A stretch of 47,565 bases of DNA from Pelomyxa schiedti (taxonomy: Eukaryota > Protista > Evosea). A model generated the notes under the pieces. The model was not told the DNA's origin, did no database searches, and worked only from the letters and a program-made list of their open reading frames with translations. How positions within the stretch are numbered: position 1 is the first letter of the stretch; each line of letters opens with the position of its first letter. A program made the position numbers and the translations under genes. Of this stretch, positions 10,832 through 33,013 are shown in pieces. The stretch lies in the NCBI GenBank assembly GCA_020536535.1, contig JAHLWZ010000920.1, positions 1 through 47,565 of the forward strand, written 5' to 3'.

Positions 10832-13800
10832 TCAGGACAGAACCTTGTCAAGAACGAGGGCGAGTGAGGAGAGCGATGCCGGTTTGCTAACATACTCGTT
10901 CATTCCTGAGGGATTGTTGGGAGTGTTAGCGGCCGGGTGTGAAGCACAGCGGCTTGTTACCTGCTTCTGTGCATTTGGTTTTATCTCCTTCAAGTGCGTG
11001 TGCTGTTAGGGCTATGATAGGGGTGGTAATCCCTAATTTTCGTATCTCTTTTGTTGTTTGGTAGCCATCCATCTTGGGCATCTATTAGAAATAAGGTTTG
11101 GTAGGATTTCGTTGAACGGGTTGTAATACCTGGCAATCCATGAAGATGGCATCAAAAGGCTGTTTATTGACAACAATCAGGGCTTCAATACCATTATCAA
11201 CTGCTGTGACTCTATGCCCAAGGCGTGCAAGTTGGGCATTAATAACTTTCTGGTTCACAGGGTTATCCTCAACAATGAGGATAGTGAGTGCCCTTTTTGC
11301 TCTTGGTATTGACGCTTCTTCACTCCTGTGGAAGGGCAGTACTTTCAAAGAAACAGAAGGCAAGGAAAATGGAATTGTCACACAGAAGGTGGAGCCCTTT
11401 CCAGGGGAACTCTTTGCTTGGATACTCCCACCCATTACTTCCGTCAGCTGCTTTGCAATGGCAAGTCCAAGTCCACTTCCTCCATATGATCGGGACGGGG
11501 AAGAATCAATCTGAGTGAATGGTTGGAATAGCTTGCTGAGATTTGTTCCTGCAATTCCAATTCCTGTATCTTCAACCTCAAACAGCAAAGTGATAGTTGA
11601 AGATGCATTTGCTCTGTCTGAAGCAGAAACCCTGAGGTTGACACTGCCAACTTCCGTGAACTTGACTGCGTTGCCCACCAAATTTGTGAGAACTTGCCTC
11701 ATTCTGTTCTGGTCACCACACACTTGTAAAGGAGTGGCGTTGGATATCTCCGCTGTTAATTGTAACCCTTTCTGTTCCGCTTGAGGCGTGAACAACGCTG
11801 TTATGCTCGTAACTAGTTTATGTACATCAAATGGCTCACAGACAAGAGTAAGCCGGTGTACATCAAGCCTGGCAAGGTCCAGAACACTGTTCAATACACT
11901 CAACAAGCTGTCACAAGAAGACTGCAGAATCGTTACATATTCTTGCTGGATTGCCGTGAGAGAAGTTTCAAGAAGCAAGTCCGCCATTCCAATCATTGCA
12001 GTGAGTGGGGTACGGATTTCATGGCTCATATTCGCCAAAAACTAATAGTAATTAAATGGACTAGTTTCAAAGAAAAAAGACACACCTCACTTTTTACTTT
12101 TGCTGACTCCATTGCCGCATCAGTAGCCCGTACAAGTTCAGAGTTCAGTTTCGTTAGCTCCTTGGTTCGTTCAGCTACTTTTCTCTCCAACATTTGCGCA
12201 AATTCCTTTTGCTCGTGGATATCAGTTGAGGAGCCAAACCAGCGTACAACAGTTACATCGGCGGTGCCTGGATAAATTCCTGGGTTGGCGTTATGCAGAA
12301 CATGAAATAGGAGGTATACGTTTCATATCCCCATTGATGTCACCTGCAAGTAGGGGAACACCTCGAGAAAGAATCCATCTGTACTGCCCATCCCATCTCC
12401 TGACCCGGTGTTGTACTTCAAAAACCGCAGTACTACGAATAGATTTCTCCCAGATTTCCAAGGTCGAACGTACATCTTGAGGGTGAACATAGAATGTCCA
12501 CAGATCCTTTGGAGGAACACCAGAAAAAGATGAACCCACAAAGCTATACCACTGCTTATTCACGTAGTCAATTGTGCCATTTGGCTAGGTACCGTTAATA
12601 AAGGGTAATAGGGAAAAGATGTACCTCTGCTGTCCATACAATCTGGGGCAGCGACTCCATCACTGATCGCAACCGTTTTTCACTCTCAATTAGTTGTAGT
12701 TGAGCACGTTTGATGTCTGTTATATCTCTTCCTTTCACACCAAGACCACACTTTCCTCCTGGGAGTGGTGCCGCAAAGCAAGTCAAATCCCACATTTGTA
12801 CAGTAGGATCTTCTATTGATTTGCTGTATTCAGCATCGAAGGGGATTCCCTTTGACACGTGATCTAAGGCAGGTTGCAGTACACTGGTGCAAAAGTCACT
12901 GTCCAGATCTGCACAGTTCTTGCCGATGAGTTTACTCTCCTCTTTGACATAGAAAAAGCTCAAGGCTCGCTTGTTTACTTTGATTACTCTGAGGCGCTGT
13001 TTGCGGCATGAGAGTGAGGCATTATCACGAGAAAGTTACATCGTCCAGCAGCATGAGGAGTCCCGGAGAAGCATTGAAGTATGATTGAAAAGTTGCTTCA
13101 CTAGCTTGCAAGTTTTCCTCAGCTTTCTTTCGAACACTGTTTGTGGTAAATTTGTGCTTTTTGAAGGGTTTTTACCTTATATCCTCCAAGGCTGCAAGCA
13201 TCAATGGAGTGTGGTCGACGGAGTTGTGCACTGCAGTTTTTCTTGTGTGAACCCACAAAATTGTCCCATCTGTCCTGATAAGGCGATGTTCTAAATCAAA
13301 GAATTGTATAGTTCCTTGTCGCAATCTGCACAGAAGTCACAAAAGACAATAGATGGAATTAGTTCCTTGTGTTCTCTTTCTCGAACTCCAGTCTATCTTC
13401 TTCGAAAATAATAGTCTCCAGACGTTTTCCACGCAGTTTAGAGCGACTTTCCCCCAAAATGTGGCACGCATGCTCATTAACAGCACTGAATTCATCCCTC
13501 TCGTTAAATTCTATCAGACCAACACCGGCATTTTGAAATATAACTTTCAAGTGTTGTTCACCCTGTGAGAATAACATTAATCATGAAACTGATTATGCGT
13601 ATCTACCTGTGTAAGTGCCTCTTCGGCACGCCTTCTTAGCCTGATATCATAGACCATAAATAGGGTCAAACAAGTAAATCCAACTCCAACAGAGAGAGAA
13701 TATGCCGCATATGCAAAGTTGGCGCTGTTGTCGCATTCCCCCAAAGCAGGGAAAGACACCCAACCAAGGAGCCTCAACGCAACCCACACGCATATACAAA

Positions 13801-14429: not shown

Positions 14430-16204
14430 ATGCAAGACCTAGTTAATATTGGCGCCGTACCTGGCTCGATCACTTTGCTCAAGTGAATTCTCTTTCTAAA
14501 CGTGATACAAGGTCACCTTTGTTAATTGTGTGCAGAGTAAGAAGGGAAGATATGAACAGACTTTCTCCAGCAATATTGCCTTTACTACTGTACCCACGGT
14601 GAATACCTCCGATCGACATTAATCTTTGTTAATTTCATTTAGAAAATCGTCTCGATTTTTCATCTTCATAGAAACAGGTATGAGGCTTAGCCTCTTGTTT
14701 AATCTTGACATATCTTAGACTCTGAGATCTCTTTGTTTCTAGATCAACAGACGTCGCAGTATGCTTTTTTTCCTTTTCATCCATCACTTACTTCCATCAG
14801 AAATTTCTCCTACAAATATGTAAGACCTTGTTCGACGAAATGGCGTGCTCTTTCTATAGGAACTGGTGCATCAGTTCAAGGTAATTACACTGAGATATTA
14901 TGTAGTCATCTGATTTGTCCAAGGGGCCATTGCTCAAGTATCGTCCCTACTTAGGTATAGTGACTGGGTTCCTTTCCCTTATAACACCTTAACAGTGCAC
15001 TTGGTGTTCCTATGTTTGTGGTCTCTACGTATGCCAACTACGCAGCTTTTTTGTGATTTTAAACCGGCACAAGGTTTGACTTGGACTACATTCTAGTCCC
15101 AGAGGATTCTTTGACCCGAACTGTATCTGTATTGATGAAGAAGTTTTCGCCAGACTCTTCACTTCTACAACAACTTCAGCAGCAACACCTGCAGCAGCAA
15201 CAGCAGCTCCAACAACAACAACAGCAACACTTACAACAACTTCAACAATTACAGTTGCAACAACCGCTGGACAGTCACACAGAACAACCTGACACAACAA
15301 ACACCGTGCAAAATCCAACTGATCTAGCAGAACACTCCGAGCTTTCTGACCACTCGGATCTTGCGGACTACGACCACTCCATAGCCGACAGTGAGTCCAG
15401 CACACCTCTCGGCTCGTGCACTGTTGACGACTACCCTGGAAATAAGTTTGCCTTGCACACAGAAAAGTAATCTCCGTTATCTAAGATGGTTTTTGTATTA
15501 ATTCTCAAAATTTGTACTAGAGTGATCTTAACAAGGTATCATTATTCAACAGTTGACCTATGCTCTAAAAATTCTAAGACCCAGAGACCTGGATAGTATC
15601 ACTCAGGCACTACTTCGGATGATGTTTTACCCCACAAAGTACCAACTTTGGAGTCTCTAAATTTTCTTACTCCTTGCAGGCCTAACTGGTTCTTCTGTTA
15701 TGTTGGTATTGGCATATGTTCTATATTATTATCTCCTCCTAACTCCGCCAGACATTGCTGAAGAAATATCCGTTTATATGTCCGAAACACTTTACAATAA
15801 TTTCCCACATAGATCTATGGTGAAACTCAATAATAACTTTGATCTTTCTTGTACTAAAACCAATAAGTGTGAATCTAGTGAGTGGCGAGTACTACAGTGG
15901 CTGAACAAAAGTTCCAAAGTGTCTTTTCTCTCTGAAACAAAGGCACTCAGTGAGGCAAGCGTTCCTCTTGCGATAGCTGGTTTTGATGTCTTATATCTTT
16001 CAAGCTTCACCAGCTCTTATTTGATGGTGAGGAACGCCACTACGGGAACATTCTAACAGCCCACAGGTACAAACCGAGAAAATCAGTGGTGCTGTTACCG
16101 CACTATTACACAGCCATGTCAATGTAGTGAACGAGTCCCGCCAGCCTCTCGTCGTGGAAGAACCCGTAGAAGACGAGCTTGCAACACTAGGAAACATTTA
16201 CTAA
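14430..16204 (+). CDS. CASTOR/GATS-like four-ACT-domain protein with a poly-Gln linker
   Basis: Spliced first half: ILPLLLYPRKSSRFFIFIETDSEISLFLD...WRALSI...LGVPMFVVSTFDLDYILVPED. Second half: LLRMMFYP...FFCYVDIAEEISVYMSE...WRVLQ...PLAIAGFDVLYLSSFTSSYLMV. Both are collinear with the two halves of CASTOR1. Confidence 0.8.
15166..15262 (+). repeat. CAA/CAG-rich poly-Gln/Leu coding repeat
   Basis: Encodes LQQLQQQHLQQQQQLQQQQQQHLQQLQQLQLQQ between ACT2 and ACT3. Confidence 0.85.
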
Positions 16205-19631: not shown

Positions 19632-20763
19632 ATGGCGGGTATTTGGGAGCTGCCAACGGAGTTTGGATACGAGTCAGCGTGCAAAAATAGATACAATATG
19701 CCTTCAGTGGTCAGCCCTAAAGGTTGAAACCAAACCAACTTTTTTTTATTACTCCAAACCCCATGATTTGTGGTCCTTTCCTTTTTTAACTGTTTGTGCC
19801 ATCAGGACTCAAGATTGAGCTGATGGTCAGCAATGGGTTTGTGAGACTGTATAATCAAACAGGGAGGGCATATCTAGTAGCACAGGGAAACACTCTTCAC
19901 GTGACTCCTGACTGGAAAGTCCATTTCTCTGTTTGCAAGGAGGACATTCCACGGGCATGGTGTGCTACTAGTGCTGTTTTATTATCTGAAGAAAAATGAA
20001 CATTAGAATCATCTATCTACACTCTCGCATATTTTGCATCAATGACCTTCTTGACAGGGGAATATTGACAAACTTTGTTGTAGAATGCAACTTGGTTGCC
20101 ACAGCCATGAAGGCCGTAACTTTCTTGGATTCTTCTATTGACGGGGATAGATGGCCTGAAACAATGCATGGGAGGGAAATTACTGTTTATATTTATAAAT
20201 ATCATTCCTCGTATGTACTTCATTGAGGGGTTTGCAACGCTAATATACGCCTCTACCAGATACGGGAAGGGAATAGAATACACTGAAGACGGTAAAAATC
20301 TTTTGATTCCTTTACGGAAATGTGACGAATGCCCACCTCGATTCTGGCTCGACTTTATCTCGAAGGCTGATAAAATGGTGCGATTTTTTTTTTTTCTTAG
20401 TCGGACTCAGCCCCTGTCTAAAAACAGCTTGCCAATGAGAATATCCATACAAATGGGGGATGTGCCAAGGGTGATTTGCCAATGGGGAAGTATGCCAGTT
20501 TGAGAAATGAAGCCTTTGTGCTCTGGCCAAAAGAGGTCATACATGCCGATCCCAAAACCTCCAGTAAGGAACCTGAACTGGAGTACTGTTATCCTCCAAA
20601 TGAAAGCGGCTGGAATGGCGCCAATCACGAGCCTCCTTTCCCTCTAACAAGACTAGGAAAGTTATATGCCTCACCACTAACCAGAGTTGCCATATTTATG
20701 TGTTGTGCTTGTCTGGCCTTGGCCATTTTTCTCGCCGTATCTCCACACAACACGAATCCCTGA
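19632..20763 (+). CDS. OspF/SpvC-like phosphothreonine lyase homologue with a C-terminal hydrophobic segment (283 aa, 4 introns)
   Basis: Introns at 19723-19805, 19960-20057, 20211-20259 and 20378-20427 (all GT-AG) give an 852-nt open CDS. Motifs in order: DWKVHFSVCKEDIPRAW, TAMKAV, GREITVYI, DFISKADKMLANENI and GDLPMGKYASLRNE. The 3' end may extend if another intron is used. Confidence 0.75.
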
Positions 20764-21250
20764 AGCCAAAGAACATTTTGTACAAACATTTTTCCTATTG
20801 GTTCTTTACTGTTCCCCAAAACCCTGCAGAATCGTTCTGTTTGCATCGCTACTTGCCTCACCTGGCAAGTCACAGAACATCCAAAGCCTGGAAGAACACA
20901 TGTCAGGACACTGGAAAAAAGTGAATAAACATCTGCTGTTGGTACGAAAGAGCAAGTTTCATTCGTGGATTGGCCGTTCTAACACTTACAGTGCGGAGAA
21001 TGCAGTCGAAGCAGCAGAAAAAACCGTTGTTCCTTAGCATAATTCCAACTGGTTAGCGTAACCAAGACGAAGTACAAGTACTTCAGGGCGCATTAAAAGC
21101 CCGTTCACATGAAAACAACCATTTCAACCAAATAACCAAAACGATAAAGCGAGCGGCAACGCGAACCAACGCAACTTACGGGCCGTGCTACCCACGCGAA
21201 ACGAACGAACGAACGCTAAGCGCGTACTACCTACTACTACAACACAAAAT

Positions 21251-23966: not shown

Positions 23967-26422
23967 CTAATGCCCAGCAGCGGACATTTTGGCTAAGTCC
24001 CGAATTTCCTTGCGGCCTTTCGCCGTCAGAAATTTGAACATTCCTGATAGTGAACAAGAGCCTATCAATGCTGCTCCAGTAACTGCAGTAAGAAATATAA
24101 AAGCATCCTTGAATGATTGTTCTGAGTAGCCAGTGTAGTAGTGAGTCTCGTAGCCATCACTGCTATCGCTCACTGATACGGAATAGGCTATGGTATAGGA
24201 ATGCTTGTTGAGGAATATTGTTACAAGTACAGGGCCAAGAGAGCCTCCAACGAATTTTAGGCATAAATTGGCTCCAGATATAGCGCCAAACTCGTCACTC
24301 TTACTGATGACAGTTATCATGTTGATTATGGCAATTGTGAGCATTCCTAGACCAACTCCAGCAACAGTATTTAAAATCACGGTTTGTGCTACAGTGTCGT
24401 GATATTCAATCATCAAGCCTATCCCAAGTACCGTGACAGCTGAAGACACAACATTTGCAACAGGATACCCTAAGGTCATCCCAAAACCAAGGGCACCAGG
24501 CATTGCTGCTATCATTGCAACACCAAAGGGTAGCAAGTACAATCCAACTTGGAGCATATCACTGGGTTCTACCTGGGGGCAAAGTTAGTTGTATAAAACG
24601 TGGAAAAACTACTTTGAAAGCCATAGATGGCTCCATGTAGAGATAAGGTAGCATCTGGAAAAGAGCGAACTGAGCAAGCCCAGATGTAACGGAAACGAAA
24701 ATAAGAACGAGTTGGTTTCGATTCAGAAGACTCTTAACAGGAATTATGGGGTGGGGCACCCAGAGTTCCCAGAAAACAAGTACAACAAGCAGGCAAAAGC
24801 CTATAATGACGAGGCACAAAGTGCCAACATCATCCCAGCCCCATGAATCGCTGTGGCAATGTTAGAGCAATGATGTCGTCAAGCCACTAAACCTGAGTGT
24901 GAAACTCATCAATATCATAATGACACCAGCAGCAAGTAAAAAGGCTCCAATTACATCCATCTTGAAGAATCTCTTTCTCATTGTCATAGGTCCCTCATCA
25001 TCCGCGTCTGCGTCTTCTACGGAAGTATTGCCATCGTCGTCTGGCCAATACTTTTTGCAACAAGGCAGGCCTAAAATACACTTCGGGATTCCCGGCATGG
25101 TGATTGCCAAGGCCACAGTAAATAAAAAGATGATAGGGAATGTTATCCAGAACACAGAGTGCCACTTGATTTGTTCGAGTGCGGCAGCACCTCCAACAAT
25201 TCCTATACTCATCCCTATACTCATCATACTTGAAATAATTCCCATTAGGGGGGTGACCAATTCATCAGGGAAAGATGTCCTTACAATAGTGAGGCCCAGT
25301 ACAAATATCTACGGCTACTAAGAATATAAAGCCAAATAGAAAAATAATACGTACAGCCATGCCAAATCCCTGCAAAGCACGCCCAGCAATAAGAACAAAT
25401 ATGCTGCTTGAACTCAGAGCACAAACCACCTGTCCTATCATGTACACTGATAAACTGGCTATAGTTATCCATTTGGGGCCAAACATATCTGCCAGAGAAC
25501 CAGAAATTGGAGTCCAAACAGCACCAATGATATTGTAAATGGATAAAATCCAGGGTACCCAGTCAGAATCCTCATAGAATTGCTTCATGATTTCGGGCAG
25601 AGCAGGGACCAAGCACAGCTCCACAAACATAACTGCAACAGACAAGAAAATCAGTTCCGATACAAGGAACCACTGGCGAACACTCAGAGACCTAAAAGGA
25701 TTTCGCTTCTTGGCCGGAGGTGTAGCATCAGGATTCTGAGTAGAAGCAATACTTTCCGTTGGAACAGGCGGTGTCAGTGATGTAACATTTATTGGCTCGT
25801 GAATGATAACTTCCAATTCAACTTCGGACTGATTTGTGGGCTCTTTTGGTGGCTCTGCCCTTTCGTGATGTTTTGTGGAATGTCTGTGGTGTTGATGGTG
25901 ATGAATGTGCTGCTCCCTCTTGGCACTAGACCCATAACTGGAACTTGTAGTACTAGACCGAGATTGGGAGCTGGAACTGGAGCTGGAGCTTGATTTGGAA
26001 CGAGAGCGAGAATGGTGAGCGGGCCTGTGGTGATTATGGGATTGATGTTGGTGCCGTTTATAATGTTCCGATGAGGGAGTTGCTGATGTTGCCGATGAAG
26101 ACGACGACGATGAAGGCGATGAAGACGACGCCGACGAGGAAGAAGAAGGGGACGAGGATGACGAGCCCGAGGAAGACGAGGACGAGGAAGACGACGAACA
26201 AGACGGGGAATGAGAACGAGACCTAGAAGAAGACGAAGAGTCGTCGTGGACTACCTTGGTTCGGATTTCTTCGTGGTTATTGGAGCCACGGTGCGGTGAT
26301 GAATATGAATGATGGGACGGGCTGTGGTGGGGCCCGTGGACTCCCCCACGACGATGATGGTCGTCGACGCGGCTGCGGGATGTGGCGTGGTGTGGCCGTT
26401 GGGGTTGTGGTGAGGACGACAT
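23967..26422 (-). CDS. MFS transporter (DHA2/14-TM-like) with a ~240-aa Ser/His-rich N-terminal extension
   Basis: LVPALPEI, WILSIY, motif A GSLADMFGPK, motif B GRALQGFG, WHSVFW, MDVIGA, PIIPVKSL and GGSLGP, plus many hydrophobic helices. Confidence 0.9.
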
Positions 26423-28445: not shown

Positions 28446-29689
28446 CTATGACCTGCGCAGGGACTTCACTTTCACCATAAAATCAGACACTCTCTGCCTT
28501 TCCACTTGATTAGCCCAGTAGCCCCCAGTTTTGAAATATGATCCAACAATAAGGGCGTCGGAGGCTTCCAGGTAGTTGTTTACATTGTCAATTGTGACAC
28601 CAGACCCAACAAGCACAGGAATATGAACATGGCTTTTCACCTTCAGGTTTTTTTTTGTTGTGTGAACCTTGGAAGTAAACGAAAAGGGGAAGTAAGGGCA
28701 TACTCGGCGAATTGCATCGAGGTCCGCTTCGGCTCCTGTAGCAACTCCTGTAACTATAACTCCATCACTAAGTAGAAGTAAGTTTTTTGAGGGAAGAAGA
28801 GTTTTCGTGCCTTAAGAAATACTCTGCCGCCTTGGCTGTTTCTTCTATACTGACATCGGCAGTTATGGCATGGGAACTATGTTTCTTCTTAATGTCCGTA
28901 ATCTTTTGAAAAAAAGGGTAGTGATTTTGGATGTTTGAAGAAGGAAGGGGAAGTGGTACAATTTTCACATTGTCTGCACCTATTGATTTTCTGTAGCGAA
29001 GTAGTTTCCCTGCGCAACTGTCCATCATGCCTGTGTATTTGAGTTGAAAGTATCAATTCGAACTTAAAGGACTATACCCTCGTCTGCCATGTGTCCAAAA
29101 ACAAATCCCTCGGCCCGAATGAAATCCAACCCAGAGGCATGTGCCACTGCAATAGCTTCTTCGTTCTGAGCAGCAAGAATCTGAATTCCGCAAGGAAGGG
29201 CAGGAGCAGCAGATTTTACCTGGTTTGGTCATCAGTACCAACTTCGAAAAAAGTAAAATAAGACAACATAAAAACAAAATGAAAATCAACAAAAGTACTC
29301 AATAGCTTCCAAAAAAGATCAGCTACTTACTGCTAGAGAGACTGCAGTCATTGTGGCAACAACCTCAGGACCAACAGCATTGAAGTTTCTGTTGAGATAA
29401 GGCACATCATGCATATTTTCCACCATAAGTGCATCAATCCCACACTCTAGGGTTTTTTTTTTTTTTAGAAGAGAACAAACCCTCAAATATAAACACGTCC
29501 CCACCCCTCGCTATACGAGTTATGGGTTGCAGGTTTACCTTTGTACAATGCCGCCTCGTTAACAGCGTTTTGGACAATTTGTGACACGGTCTTACAGCAC
29601 CCGGGGGTGCCAGGCAACGCCCCAACGTGTATCATTCCCACAATTACGCCCGGGCGCCCACCAAACAAAGGTACTCCTCGTGCGGCCAT
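28446..29689 (-). CDS. BtpA/SgcQ family TIM-barrel protein
   Basis: IVGMIHVGALPGTP, VENMHDVPY, DFIRAEGFVFGHMADEG, DIKKKHSSHAIT, DGVIVTG and PVLVGSGVT...IVGSYFK. Confidence 0.93.
28768..28810 (-). other. GC-AG intron (43 nt) in the BtpA-family gene
   Basis: TTC TTA AG|gcacg...acttag|T GAT GGA restores the conserved FLSDGVIVTG. Confidence 0.85.
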
Positions 29690-29770
29690 CTCAGAGGTTG
29701 CTTGATTCGTGATTGGTTGTACGGCGAACGAACTCGACACAAAGATTCGCCAATTTTCGCGCTGCATCAG
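29690..29770. promoter_or_regulatory. Very short head-to-head intergenic region (81 bp), candidate bidirectional promoter
   Basis: Divergent ATGs at 29689 and 29771, with ATTGG at 29712-29716 and CCAAT at 29750-29754. Confidence 0.5.
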
Positions 29771-32700
29771 ATGGCGACGAAGGGGTCACGAAACGTGCCT
29801 GCCAAGTCGACGACGCCACCGCCGGCGGCGACTCCCACGTCCACGACAACAACCACAACTTCTTCTTCGCCGGGAGCCACGAGCACGGCGTCGGGGTCGC
29901 TCAGCGCGTCGGGGGGCGTGACTGGTGCAGGCGCTGCCCAGGATTGTGGGATAACACTCACGATCGAGAAGTTTGCCAAGAGAACGGAAACCAAGGTCCG
30001 AAGCCCTGTGTGGAATAACGAGGGTTTGCAATGGTATTTTCGCCCCCTTTTTGTTTGTTGGTGTTGTGTTTCGTTCGCTTGTGGATTTGGTTTTTTTTTT
30101 TTTTTTTTTTTTTTTCTTCAAGTTTTGAAGAAAAATCTTTCCTGTGGTGGTTTTTTTTTTGTTTACATTTTTCTGTACAGGAGATTGAAGGTGTTCCCAA
30201 AGGGGAACGACGAAGAGGGTTGGATATCGGCGTATGTTGAGCTTGCTAACGCTGGTGAATTGCCTACTCCTTGGTCAGTGGAATGCCGGTGGAAAATAAC
30301 ACTGGTGCACAACGAAGACAAGTCCAAGTCAATTGAAAACAGTTGCGAAACTTGACCATTTCTACCTAGTCGCTTATGTGATCATTTTAAAATTGTCAGA
30401 ATTTAGATATACGTTTCAGCACGAATCAGACACACTGGACTGGGGTTTTAACAAATTTGTGGATTTCAAAGTTCTTCAAGAAGACCGAAACTTCTTCAAC
30501 AAAGGCGGCGCACTCACCTTTAAAGCGAATTTACTCTCTGCTGTTGTGACACCTCCACTGAGTATTTATTCCTCAATGGAGTGCAACTCACATAGAAATT
30601 CAGTTGTCAAAGTTAAAGTCTTCACGGAAAAAGACTTCTTCACACACAAGCTTGCAGACCTGATGGATGTCGATAATAAGCCTATTTCCTTCAGTGTTTC
30701 GAACAACGTTTCCTGCACCACACTTACTGTGCACTGATTTCCTTCGGTTTTTTCGTTACTCATTTTCATAAGGCTCGTGTGTCCTCATTTCTCAACATTG
30801 GAACGAAATGCTTCAGATTGTGGCGAATGGTGAGAAGAAAAAATAAAACAACTAGACCCCACGAAGTAGTAATGGAGAAGGAATTACTTAGGTGTGGACA
30901 CTTTTTTGTTCGTTTTATTAGTAACACAAAAACCCTTAGAGTAATGGCTGGGGAACTACTTCTTTTTGCGGAATGCTGTGAAGCACCTCCCCAACCACTT
31001 CCTCAGGTAGCTTCAATCGTACTGCCTACCCGTAACATGCCATAAGTATTATGCAGCTTTCCCACCGCTACCAGCAATTCTCATCTTCTTGAAATATTAC
31101 GATCCCCTATTCAGACGCCCCTGGTAGCATAAAATACTTTGCCTCATTATTCATGTATCCCAGTTATGTCGGGTCTCTCTATCTCGATCCTCTAGATTCA
31201 CTTAAATCCACCTCTCCAAAATTGCGCCAACTTGTTGGTTTACCAACGGACGCTGACTTAACTTTTTACGAGGTAACCTAAAGGCCAATAAACTGAAACT
31301 TAAGTCTAGTCTTAGGAAATTACCCCAACTAACATCGAAGTTCTGGATGCCAACAAAAACTTCAAGCAAGCCGAGCTCGTTTCTGGAGGTAAGCTTGCTC
31401 ACATATTTCAATCTGAGTCCTGTAGATGTAATTGTATATCAATCCAAGACTCTGAAAACACACAAATTGGCATCAGCATATGACTGGTATATGCATGCCA
31501 ACAACCATGTAACAGTCAAATTCGTGTATGACGCAGAAGATTCACCTCCCACTGCAACAGTAGACACTGCCCTCTCTTTTTCATTAAAGATGCATATTTT
31601 TGCATCAAAAGCACGAGTGCTTGAAAAAGTAGCTAAGAAGCTTGGAGAGATCAATCCTGAATCTTTGCTGTTACGAGACAAGAAAAAAGAGAAGCCATTG
31701 TGAGCTTTCACAGACGCTTTTTTCCCCCTTTAATAAACCAGAGGTCGGTACGAAACATTACAGGATATGCTTCTGGGTGCTGATGGCAAGGTTATCTTTT
31801 TTGAAGTTGTTGGATTTACAGAAGTGAAACTCAAAACTTTGATGCTTGTGTGCCCTCTTGTATTATATTTGAGTTTTTCTCACCATTGGTACAACTAAAG
31901 CAAAAGGCGGCCATTGACGAGGACTTGATGTGTCCTGCCTGCAAAAAACCTCATTCGACTCCCATGACTCATACCTGTGGGGCTCTTGTCTGCAATTCTT
32001 GTTTAAAGGTACCTGTTTAGCAGCTTCCCCCCCCTCCCCCCCACCTTCCATAGGAAATTTGCCCAGTGTGCAAGGTCTCTATTACACGAGATTCGATAGT
32101 GCGTGCTCCTGCTGTTGTTGAAAGGCGATTGAGTGCTTTCCACATATCCTGCCCAATTTGCAGTATGAATATTTCTCTTAGAGATTTGGAGGTCCACAGA
32201 AACGAATGCTTTATAGGTGTGCAAATTTCATGCTTACTTTTTTTTTTTAAAAAAATAATCAACAAAGATTGTCCTAGTGGGTGCAGTCTACCCGTTCTTG
32301 TCCACAACCAAAGTGAGCATCAAAGTATTTGTGCAATGAGTGCTGTTACTTGTGCCACTTGTGGTGTGGTTGTAAGGAGAGGGCACAAGATAACTCATCA
32401 CTCAAGGCGCTGCATTTCCCGTACCACTCCGCACAGTTATTTCTTTTCCCTGATTACCATTACCCCAGCATGTGCCAACGCCGGCTGTTCCCAGAACGTA
32501 GTACCAAATGGCCAATCGAAGCACGACATCGACTGCGCATTCAAAACAGTTCCCTGCCCTCAATGCGGGATGCCTATAACTACATCCATGCTTAACAAGA
32601 AGACTCCCCACTGCCAACGTAATTCATATCCCCAATATCTCCCCCCCCCTCCCATCCCCTTCTCTCTTTCTCACACAAACCCAAAAATACCAAAAATACA

Positions 32701-33013
32701 CCCAAAAATAGTGTGCACGGCATGCGGGCTCATGGTCGAGATATCGTCGATGGCGCGGCACGCCTCGCAGCTGTGCGCGGCCACCGAGGTGCCGTGCGAC
32801 TCGGCCGACACGATGCCGTGCACGTGGCGCGGGCCGAGGGGGAAGCTGCAGGACCACACCCGCGGCTGCATCTACAACGGCCTCAAGCACGTGCTGTCTC
32901 CGGTGGCTGCGCGGGAGGCCAAGGCAAAGGCCATGCTGGCCGCCGCTGAGCAAGAAAATCTGGCCCTCAAGGCCAGAATAGCAGAACTACAACAGAGGCT
33001 CTCTTCGTTGTGA
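29771..33013 (+). CDS. USP7-derived chimeric protein: MATH, USP7-type UBL1-3, RING, TRAF-type zinc fingers and coiled coil (no USP catalytic domain)
   Basis: MATH: WRLKVFPKGN...DWGFNKFV. UBL: FRLWRMVRRKNKTTRP, ILIFLKYYDP, FYEEI, ELVSGDVIVYQ, VLEKVAKKLG. RING: DLMCPAC...TCGALVCNSC...CPVC. Then TRAF fingers and a coiled coil, all joined by GT-AG introns. Confidence 0.85.

Follow-up and report, generated by a model that had tools for sequence, protein, structure and literature searches.

A spliced Pelomyxa schiedti gene for a probable endogenous lyase from an unnamed, mainly protist branch of the OspF/SpvC-LanKC/LanL superfamily

A spliced gene in a 47,565-nucleotide stretch of Pelomyxa schiedti DNA (contig JAHLWZ010000920.1, hereafter the window) probably encodes an endogenous pSer/pThr beta-eliminating lyase. 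Its family, as yet without a name and found mainly in protists, forms a branch of the OspF/SpvC-LanKC/LanL superfamily and retains nearly all of the active site of the bacterial enzymes. A genome-wide search published in 2014 found no sequence homologues of phosphothreonine lyases outside bacteria; BLES03 was there proposed as a eukaryotic lyase from its fold alone, with two of three catalytic residues and no sequence link (PMC4159009). Unlike BLES03, the family described here has a sequence link to the lyases together with the full acid-base set of residues.

The gene occupies positions 19632-20763, and all of its features lie on the + strand. It had been read from the DNA as four GT-AG introns splicing to a 283-aa product, a structure that we could reproduce: the exons sum to 852 nt (283 aa plus stop) with zero internal stops. 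Exon 1 (19632-19722), begun at an upstream ATG, is followed by intron 1 (19723-19805; 83 nt, phase 1), exon 2 (19806-19959), which holds the family motifs Y-x3-Q and PDWKxH, and intron 2 (19960-20057; 98 nt, phase 2). Exon 3 (20058-20210) holds the catalytic Lys and the GREITVY motif and is separated by intron 3 (20211-20259; 49 nt, phase 2) from exon 4 (20260-20377), which encodes a variable loop and then the beginning of a conserved FW helix. Intron 4 (20378-20427; 50 nt, phase 0) precedes exon 5, which runs through the stop codon (20428-20763). All four introns are GT-AG, and none of their lengths is divisible by three; in the published genome (52.4 Mb, 5,337 scaffolds), 98.4% of introns are GT-AG (PMC8887013). 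The NCBI model Pelo_14169 has exons 2-5 at 100% identity and four identical junctions, and starts at the second ATG (19698), making it shorter by 22 N-terminal codons (19632-19697) that match homologues. Because residues 7-26 of exon 1 match homologues, the upstream ATG at 19632 is the more likely start. A single contig from an RNA run covers 20437-20780, that is, exon 5 and 17 bases 3' of it, and neither spans an intron nor confirms a junction. It ends at 20780, 17 bases past the stop, with four unaligned letters, possibly marking a poly(A) site. Other genes on the contig encode a hybrid histidine kinase (11085-12038, -), an MFS transporter (25265-26422, -), a MATH-domain protein (29627-30355, +) and TRAF/Sina-type zinc fingers (32066-33013, +).

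Homology searches of the window gene were run exon by exon. Scored singly against a 99-member family HMM that leaves out the window protein, the five exons matched in collinear order, with E values of 5e-3, 5e-22, 1e-13, 5e-5 and 3e-27 for exons 1-5. The relationship to the OspF/SpvC fold, first suggested from motifs, was supported both by profile comparison (PDB search and hhalign) and by structure comparison (Foldseek and VIA). Against PDB sequences, the family profile retrieved VirA (4.9e-8), SpvC (6e-6) and OspF (2.6e-5), with LanKC next at 0.64 and nothing else. Alignment to SpvC by hhalign gave a probability of 95.6 and an E value of 1.1e-8, and SpvC scored 29.1 bits against the family profile where the maximum among 1,000 shuffles was 6.5. 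Atlas searches agreed with lyase homology, as leads only. The relationship is nevertheless remote: members are roughly 15-18% identical to OspF/SpvC/VirA/HopAI1 (PF03536) and lie under the Pfam cut-off. No window exon, nor the locus, gave a PF03536 match at the gathering score of 25 bits; a full-length relative, P0002, reached 18.2 bits and the Mastigella protein P0015 had no match. At E≤0.01, single members matched PF03536 in 11 of 99 cases and PF25816, the LanKC/LanL lyase domain, in 14 of 99, mostly under Pfam cut-offs. Genome scans with PF03536 and PF25816 missed the window locus, and searches of single exons against Pfam and PDB sequences returned no match, the individual exons lacking the length and similarity that such searches need.

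The fold was predicted for the Mastigella orthologue, a transcript-derived sequence that is the closest full-length relative (51% identical), in place of the window protein. Its AlphaFold (AF2) model has a pLDDT of 89. The ten best Foldseek matches to this model were all SpvC, VirA or OspF (E 2e-5), and VIA placed SpvC first, with Z 13.2 over 176 residues and an rmsd of 3.4. Lower Z scores were obtained for ThurKC (11.3), CuvL (10.6), SalKC (10.3), HopA1 (8.6; range 7.7-8.6), eIF4E (about 6.5) and BLES03 (5.8; eIF4E/BLES03 range 5.6-6.6). As judged on this modelled orthologue, the alpha/beta phosphothreonine-lyase fold is present.

The initial annotation held that the catalytic residues are kept, and its codon positions proved right. 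For each of SpvC K104, H106, K136, Y158, D201, R213, N214 and E215, the aligned family column has the same residue, which is also present in the window exons. These columns are 99-100% conserved among 99 aligned members and 152 further sequences, where mean column identity is 19%, a conservation that is partly circular because members were gathered with a profile. In the window gene, the Lys (codon at 19916) and His (codon at 19922) of 19916-19924 correspond to SpvC K104 and H106 (ThurKC K65 and H67) and are 100% conserved, and the Lys at 20110-20112 corresponds by profile alignment and conservation to the SpvC catalytic base, K136. Profile alignment likewise matches the Tyr at 20188-20190 to Y158 and the RNE motif at 20503-20511 to R213, N214 and E215. 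The Asp of a GD motif at 20473-20475, equivalent to D201, had been missed in the initial annotation. Alignment to solved structures would bring these residues together in one pocket, with roles taken from work on SpvC and ThurKC (PMC4159009, PMC10604976, PMC2843593).

Two phosphate-binding arginines of SpvC, R148 and R220, had been thought to lack an obvious match. This stands for R220. For R148, the invariant Arg of GRE (20173-20175) aligns to the Lys of the ThurKC SGK motif, which is K117 by count, and K117 has been named as the counterpart of SpvC R148 (PMC10604976); the early guess that the GRE Arg substitutes at the LanKC GK lysine therefore holds. No R220 equivalent was found by sequence, and after RNE the family has no conserved basic residue except one His. 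ThurKC supplies its own R220 counterpart from a displaced position (PMC10604976), and the missing gapless match in the family is thus not decisive. Among the four phosphate ligands of SpvC, then, K104 and R213 have direct equivalents, the GRE Arg has the place of R148, and R220 has no counterpart by sequence. Several invariant family residues are absent from SpvC, namely Y-x3-Q, DW, the Glu of GRE and a YPPN-x2-GWN motif (20590-20619) that follows the RNE strand and has no sequence match in SpvC.

A further difference from SpvC concerns substrate recognition. The pTyr pocket of SpvC is formed by K134, K160 and F100 (PMC4159009). These positions are not conserved in the family, where they are Gly/Ala, Tyr/Phe and Thr/Leu, respectively. 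Moreover, the structural alignment opens with SpvC residue 53 opposite residue 9 of the model, and the first 45-50 or so residues of SpvC are absent. This N-terminal region carries the MAPK-docking motif of SpvC. With pocket, N-terminal extension and R220 equivalent all absent, MAPK specificity is doubtful, and the case for an irreversible kinase-off role is weaker than the initial annotation implied.

Set against known systems, the family resembles OspF, SpvC, VirA and HopAI1 in fold, in consisting of a single stand-alone domain and in its catalytic equivalents, and departs from them in its LanKC-type basic residue for R148 and its extra YPPN-x2-GWN motif. The window protein also bears a membrane tail and comes from a spliced nuclear gene, whereas theirs are injected effectors. 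Pfam score, pTyr pocket and the N-terminal secretion/MAPK-docking extension, each a mark of the OspF/SpvC family, all set the window gene and its relatives apart. With the LanKC/LanL lyase domain (PF25816; ThurKC), the family shares the fold (Z 10-11), the WKxH motif, lack of a pTyr pocket and a basic residue straight after Gly in the G-x-x-x-T-x-Y strand (K117). In contrast to LanKC/LanL, it has Arg for Lys, lacks both the kinase and the cyclase domain, comes with neither a precursor peptide nor a gene cluster, and is nearer SpvC in its C-terminal half; a class III/IV lanthipeptide synthetase is a lyase-kinase-cyclase fusion with a precursor gene, whereas the window protein is a 283-aa single domain. 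Similarity to the HopA1/LanY lyases (PF17914; Z 7.7-8.6) and to BLES03/C11orf68 is distant and one of fold, and LanY is without K104 and H106 equivalents (PMC9486802). On present evidence the family would be OspF-like in its working, and it is best classified within the lyase superfamily as a new branch.

The hydrophobic C-terminal tail noted earlier was confirmed by a Kyte-Doolittle 19-residue mean of 2.74 at 20686-20742, a predicted transmembrane (tail-anchor) segment followed by six residues. Exon 1 contains no signal-like hydrophobic stretch, and this prediction is therefore read most simply as a tail anchor that leaves the domain in the cytosol. Tails are also present in the Mastigella, Platysulcus and Spironema proteins. 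Across the family, they occur in only 22 of 99 members and are absent from the dinoflagellate and bacterial-contig members examined.

Single-exon searches of the P. schiedti assembly (52,367,397 bases, 5,337 contigs) revealed two paralogues, on contigs C790 and C845, making the window gene one of three. Both retain the motifs and the hydrophobic tail. Matches on C423 and C939 were dropped as weak and not recovered by the family profile. The C845 paralogue lies at about 14600-15700 (-), with frames at 1426-1734 and 800-1290 of locus L002 (P0175). KAH3746134.1, a 465-aa protein that NCBI names 'ADP-ribosylation factor 1', joins this paralogue to an adjoining ARF gene; since the lyase frame ends in a tail and stop codon of its own, the entry is probably a merged gene model under which the paralogue is misnamed. 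The genome also contains four LanC-like (PF05147) loci, on C650, C721, C42 and C1769, none of them near the lyase genes.

A natural 218-codon open frame in the C790 paralogue led to four intronless homologues from short contigs; their profile in turn recovered 187 proteins. Searched against 1.84 billion representatives, the 99-member profile matched 574 clusters at E≤0.001, with a weak tail that may include true OspF or LanL proteins, 250 at 1e-10 and 148 at 1e-30. The family occurs in amoebozoans (Mastigella, Protostelium, Nematostelium), choanoflagellates (Salpingoeca, Didymoeca), dinoflagellates (Cladocopium, Ansanella, Polykrikos, Amphidinium) and one each of cryptophyte, rhizarian, stramenopile, hemimastigote and metamonad, with Rhodomonas, Lotharella, Platysulcus, Spironema and Paratrimastix as further named members, as well as in one giant-virus MAG and on a few contigs of bacteria. 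Two metagenomic members sit among eukaryotic genes. Animals, fungi and land plants contributed none of the named members recovered, and the reach of the family to model organisms therefore looks limited. A fusion of the family domain with DUF1810, present in P0104 (a Rhodomonas cluster) and in P0089, may hint at function. The family is unnamed and without description in the largely open-access literature searched.

Prokaryotic members are rare, amounting to 3 loci in 2 MAGs among 185,579 prokaryotic species (GTDB) plus a few bacterial-looking contigs, and the phage and plasmid collections searched held none. Neighbours of the bacterial-contig members include RCC1, F-box, LRR, Sel1 and TPR proteins, which are typical of bacteria inside protists. 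Three such members have in common a gene that lies head-to-head with them (L034 7307-7879, L035 7299-7964 and L038 7281-7949, all -); it encodes 190-222 aa, is 53-64% identical among the three and has no Pfam match. In the gammaproteobacterial MAG contig CAVRXV010000005.1 (L027 and L028, 5980-9160), a 3.2-kb block comprising a family gene and an unknown 480-aa ORF occurs twice, 99% identical and about 50 kb apart, amid RCC1, F-box and LRR genes. The giant-virus MAG GVMAG-M-3300014493-9 encodes a full member (L030 4896-5735).

In a quick maximum-likelihood tree, where the NCBI protein Pelo_14169 stands for it, the window gene pairs with its Mastigella orthologue (support 96). The C790 paralogue lies far off, with Spironema and environmental sequences (99), the dinoflagellate sequences cluster together (98), and members from bacterial contigs appear at two separate places. 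The earlier proposal of a 'domesticated' bacterial effector is not supported by these results, given a broad and mostly eukaryotic family, the pairing with Mastigella and the divided position of the bacterial-contig members. Copies in other protists were found in many lineages; the tree is unrooted, with a poorly resolved backbone that gives no direction of transfer. Its topology agrees with inheritance within Pelomyxidae, in a family that is old, has been kept patchily and has seen some transfers.

By analogy with SpvC, whose chemistry is beta-elimination of phosphate (PMC2843593, PMC4159009), the Lys at 19916 and the Arg residues at 20173 and 20503 would hold the phosphate, the Lys at 20110, aided by the Tyr at 20188, would take the alpha-proton, and the His at 19922, with the Asp at 20473, would protonate the leaving group. 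The product would be dehydroalanine or dehydrobutyrine, which could not be re-phosphorylated. The C-terminal helix may anchor the enzyme at the cytosolic face of a membrane, where its substrate would be a phosphoprotein selected without pTyr, probably through the family's own Y-x3-Q, DW and YPPN-x2-GWN. Eukaryotic LanCL enzymes act on dehydroamino acids (PMC9934072), and, as a putative link, LanCL proteins encoded elsewhere in the P. schiedti genome could use glutathione to cap the product.

Four other readings were weighed against a protein lyase of this kind. The fold and pocket might serve another job, with the protein binding a phospho-residue or nucleotide or acting as an enzyme on a small phosphorylated molecule. 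The missing R220 equivalent and the invariant residues that SpvC lacks are compatible with such a role, the same fold serves cap binding in eIF4E, and conservation so uniform across distant protists suggests one fixed ligand. We nonetheless regard this as unlikely, because three residues that only catalysis requires (the base, the acid and the Asp that partners the acid) are all invariant, eIF4E is without K136 and H106 equivalents (PMC4159009), and the displaced counterpart in ThurKC lessens the weight of the R220 gap. It is quite unlikely that the protein is a true OspF-like inactivator that attacks pT-X-pY loops and irreversibly switches off MAPKs of the amoeba itself or of its prey: loss of the pTyr pocket and of the SpvC N-terminal region speaks against it, even though SpvC, VirA and OspF outrank LanKC in both profile and structure comparisons and the YxSxRNE strand resembles that of SpvC.

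Very unlikely, in our judgment, is a lyase working in a dispersed lanthipeptide-like pathway of kinase, lyase and LanCL that makes thioether-linked peptides or proteins. In its favour, two motifs, WKxH and G[KR]xxTxY, are of LanKC type and the genome has its four LanCL loci, but LanCL is common in eukaryotes by itself, and neither a kinase nor LanC was found as a fusion or a neighbour in the window, at the bacterial loci or in the ten longer members scanned; a lanthipeptide cluster was rejected. The chance that we are dealing with a fortuitous string of motifs, with contaminating bacterial DNA or with an effector gene acquired recently is close to negligible. Capture might be suggested by the member in a giant-virus MAG and by those that neighbour RCC1, F-box, LRR and Sel1 genes on contigs of bacteria, and no read crosses an intron. 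Against this stand four canonical introns common to the NCBI model, eukaryotic neighbours on the contig, a nearest relative in the sister genus Mastigella and the rarity of the family in prokaryotes together with its absence from the phage and plasmid collections searched, and recent bacterial capture was rejected as largely refuted.

Taking the endogenous lyase as the preferred reading, we tentatively advance a wider one, somewhat short of an even chance: that the family is an old, native eukaryotic eliminylase retained in at least seven major protist lineages, a third branch standing between the OspF effectors and the lanthipeptide lyases. Protists would, on this proposal, convert their own phosphoproteins to dehydroamino acids, possibly feeding LanCL, and would have lent the gene to intracellular bacteria and to giant viruses of protists. 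On sequence grounds, the family offers a direct candidate for a phosphothreonine lyase native to eukaryotes. Its members are small single-domain proteins and occur in culturable protists (Salpingoeca, Amphidinium, Rhodomonas and Paratrimastix). If active, they would give eukaryotic signalling a further modification, made by an enzyme and irreversible, and would bear on the origin of the OspF effectors.
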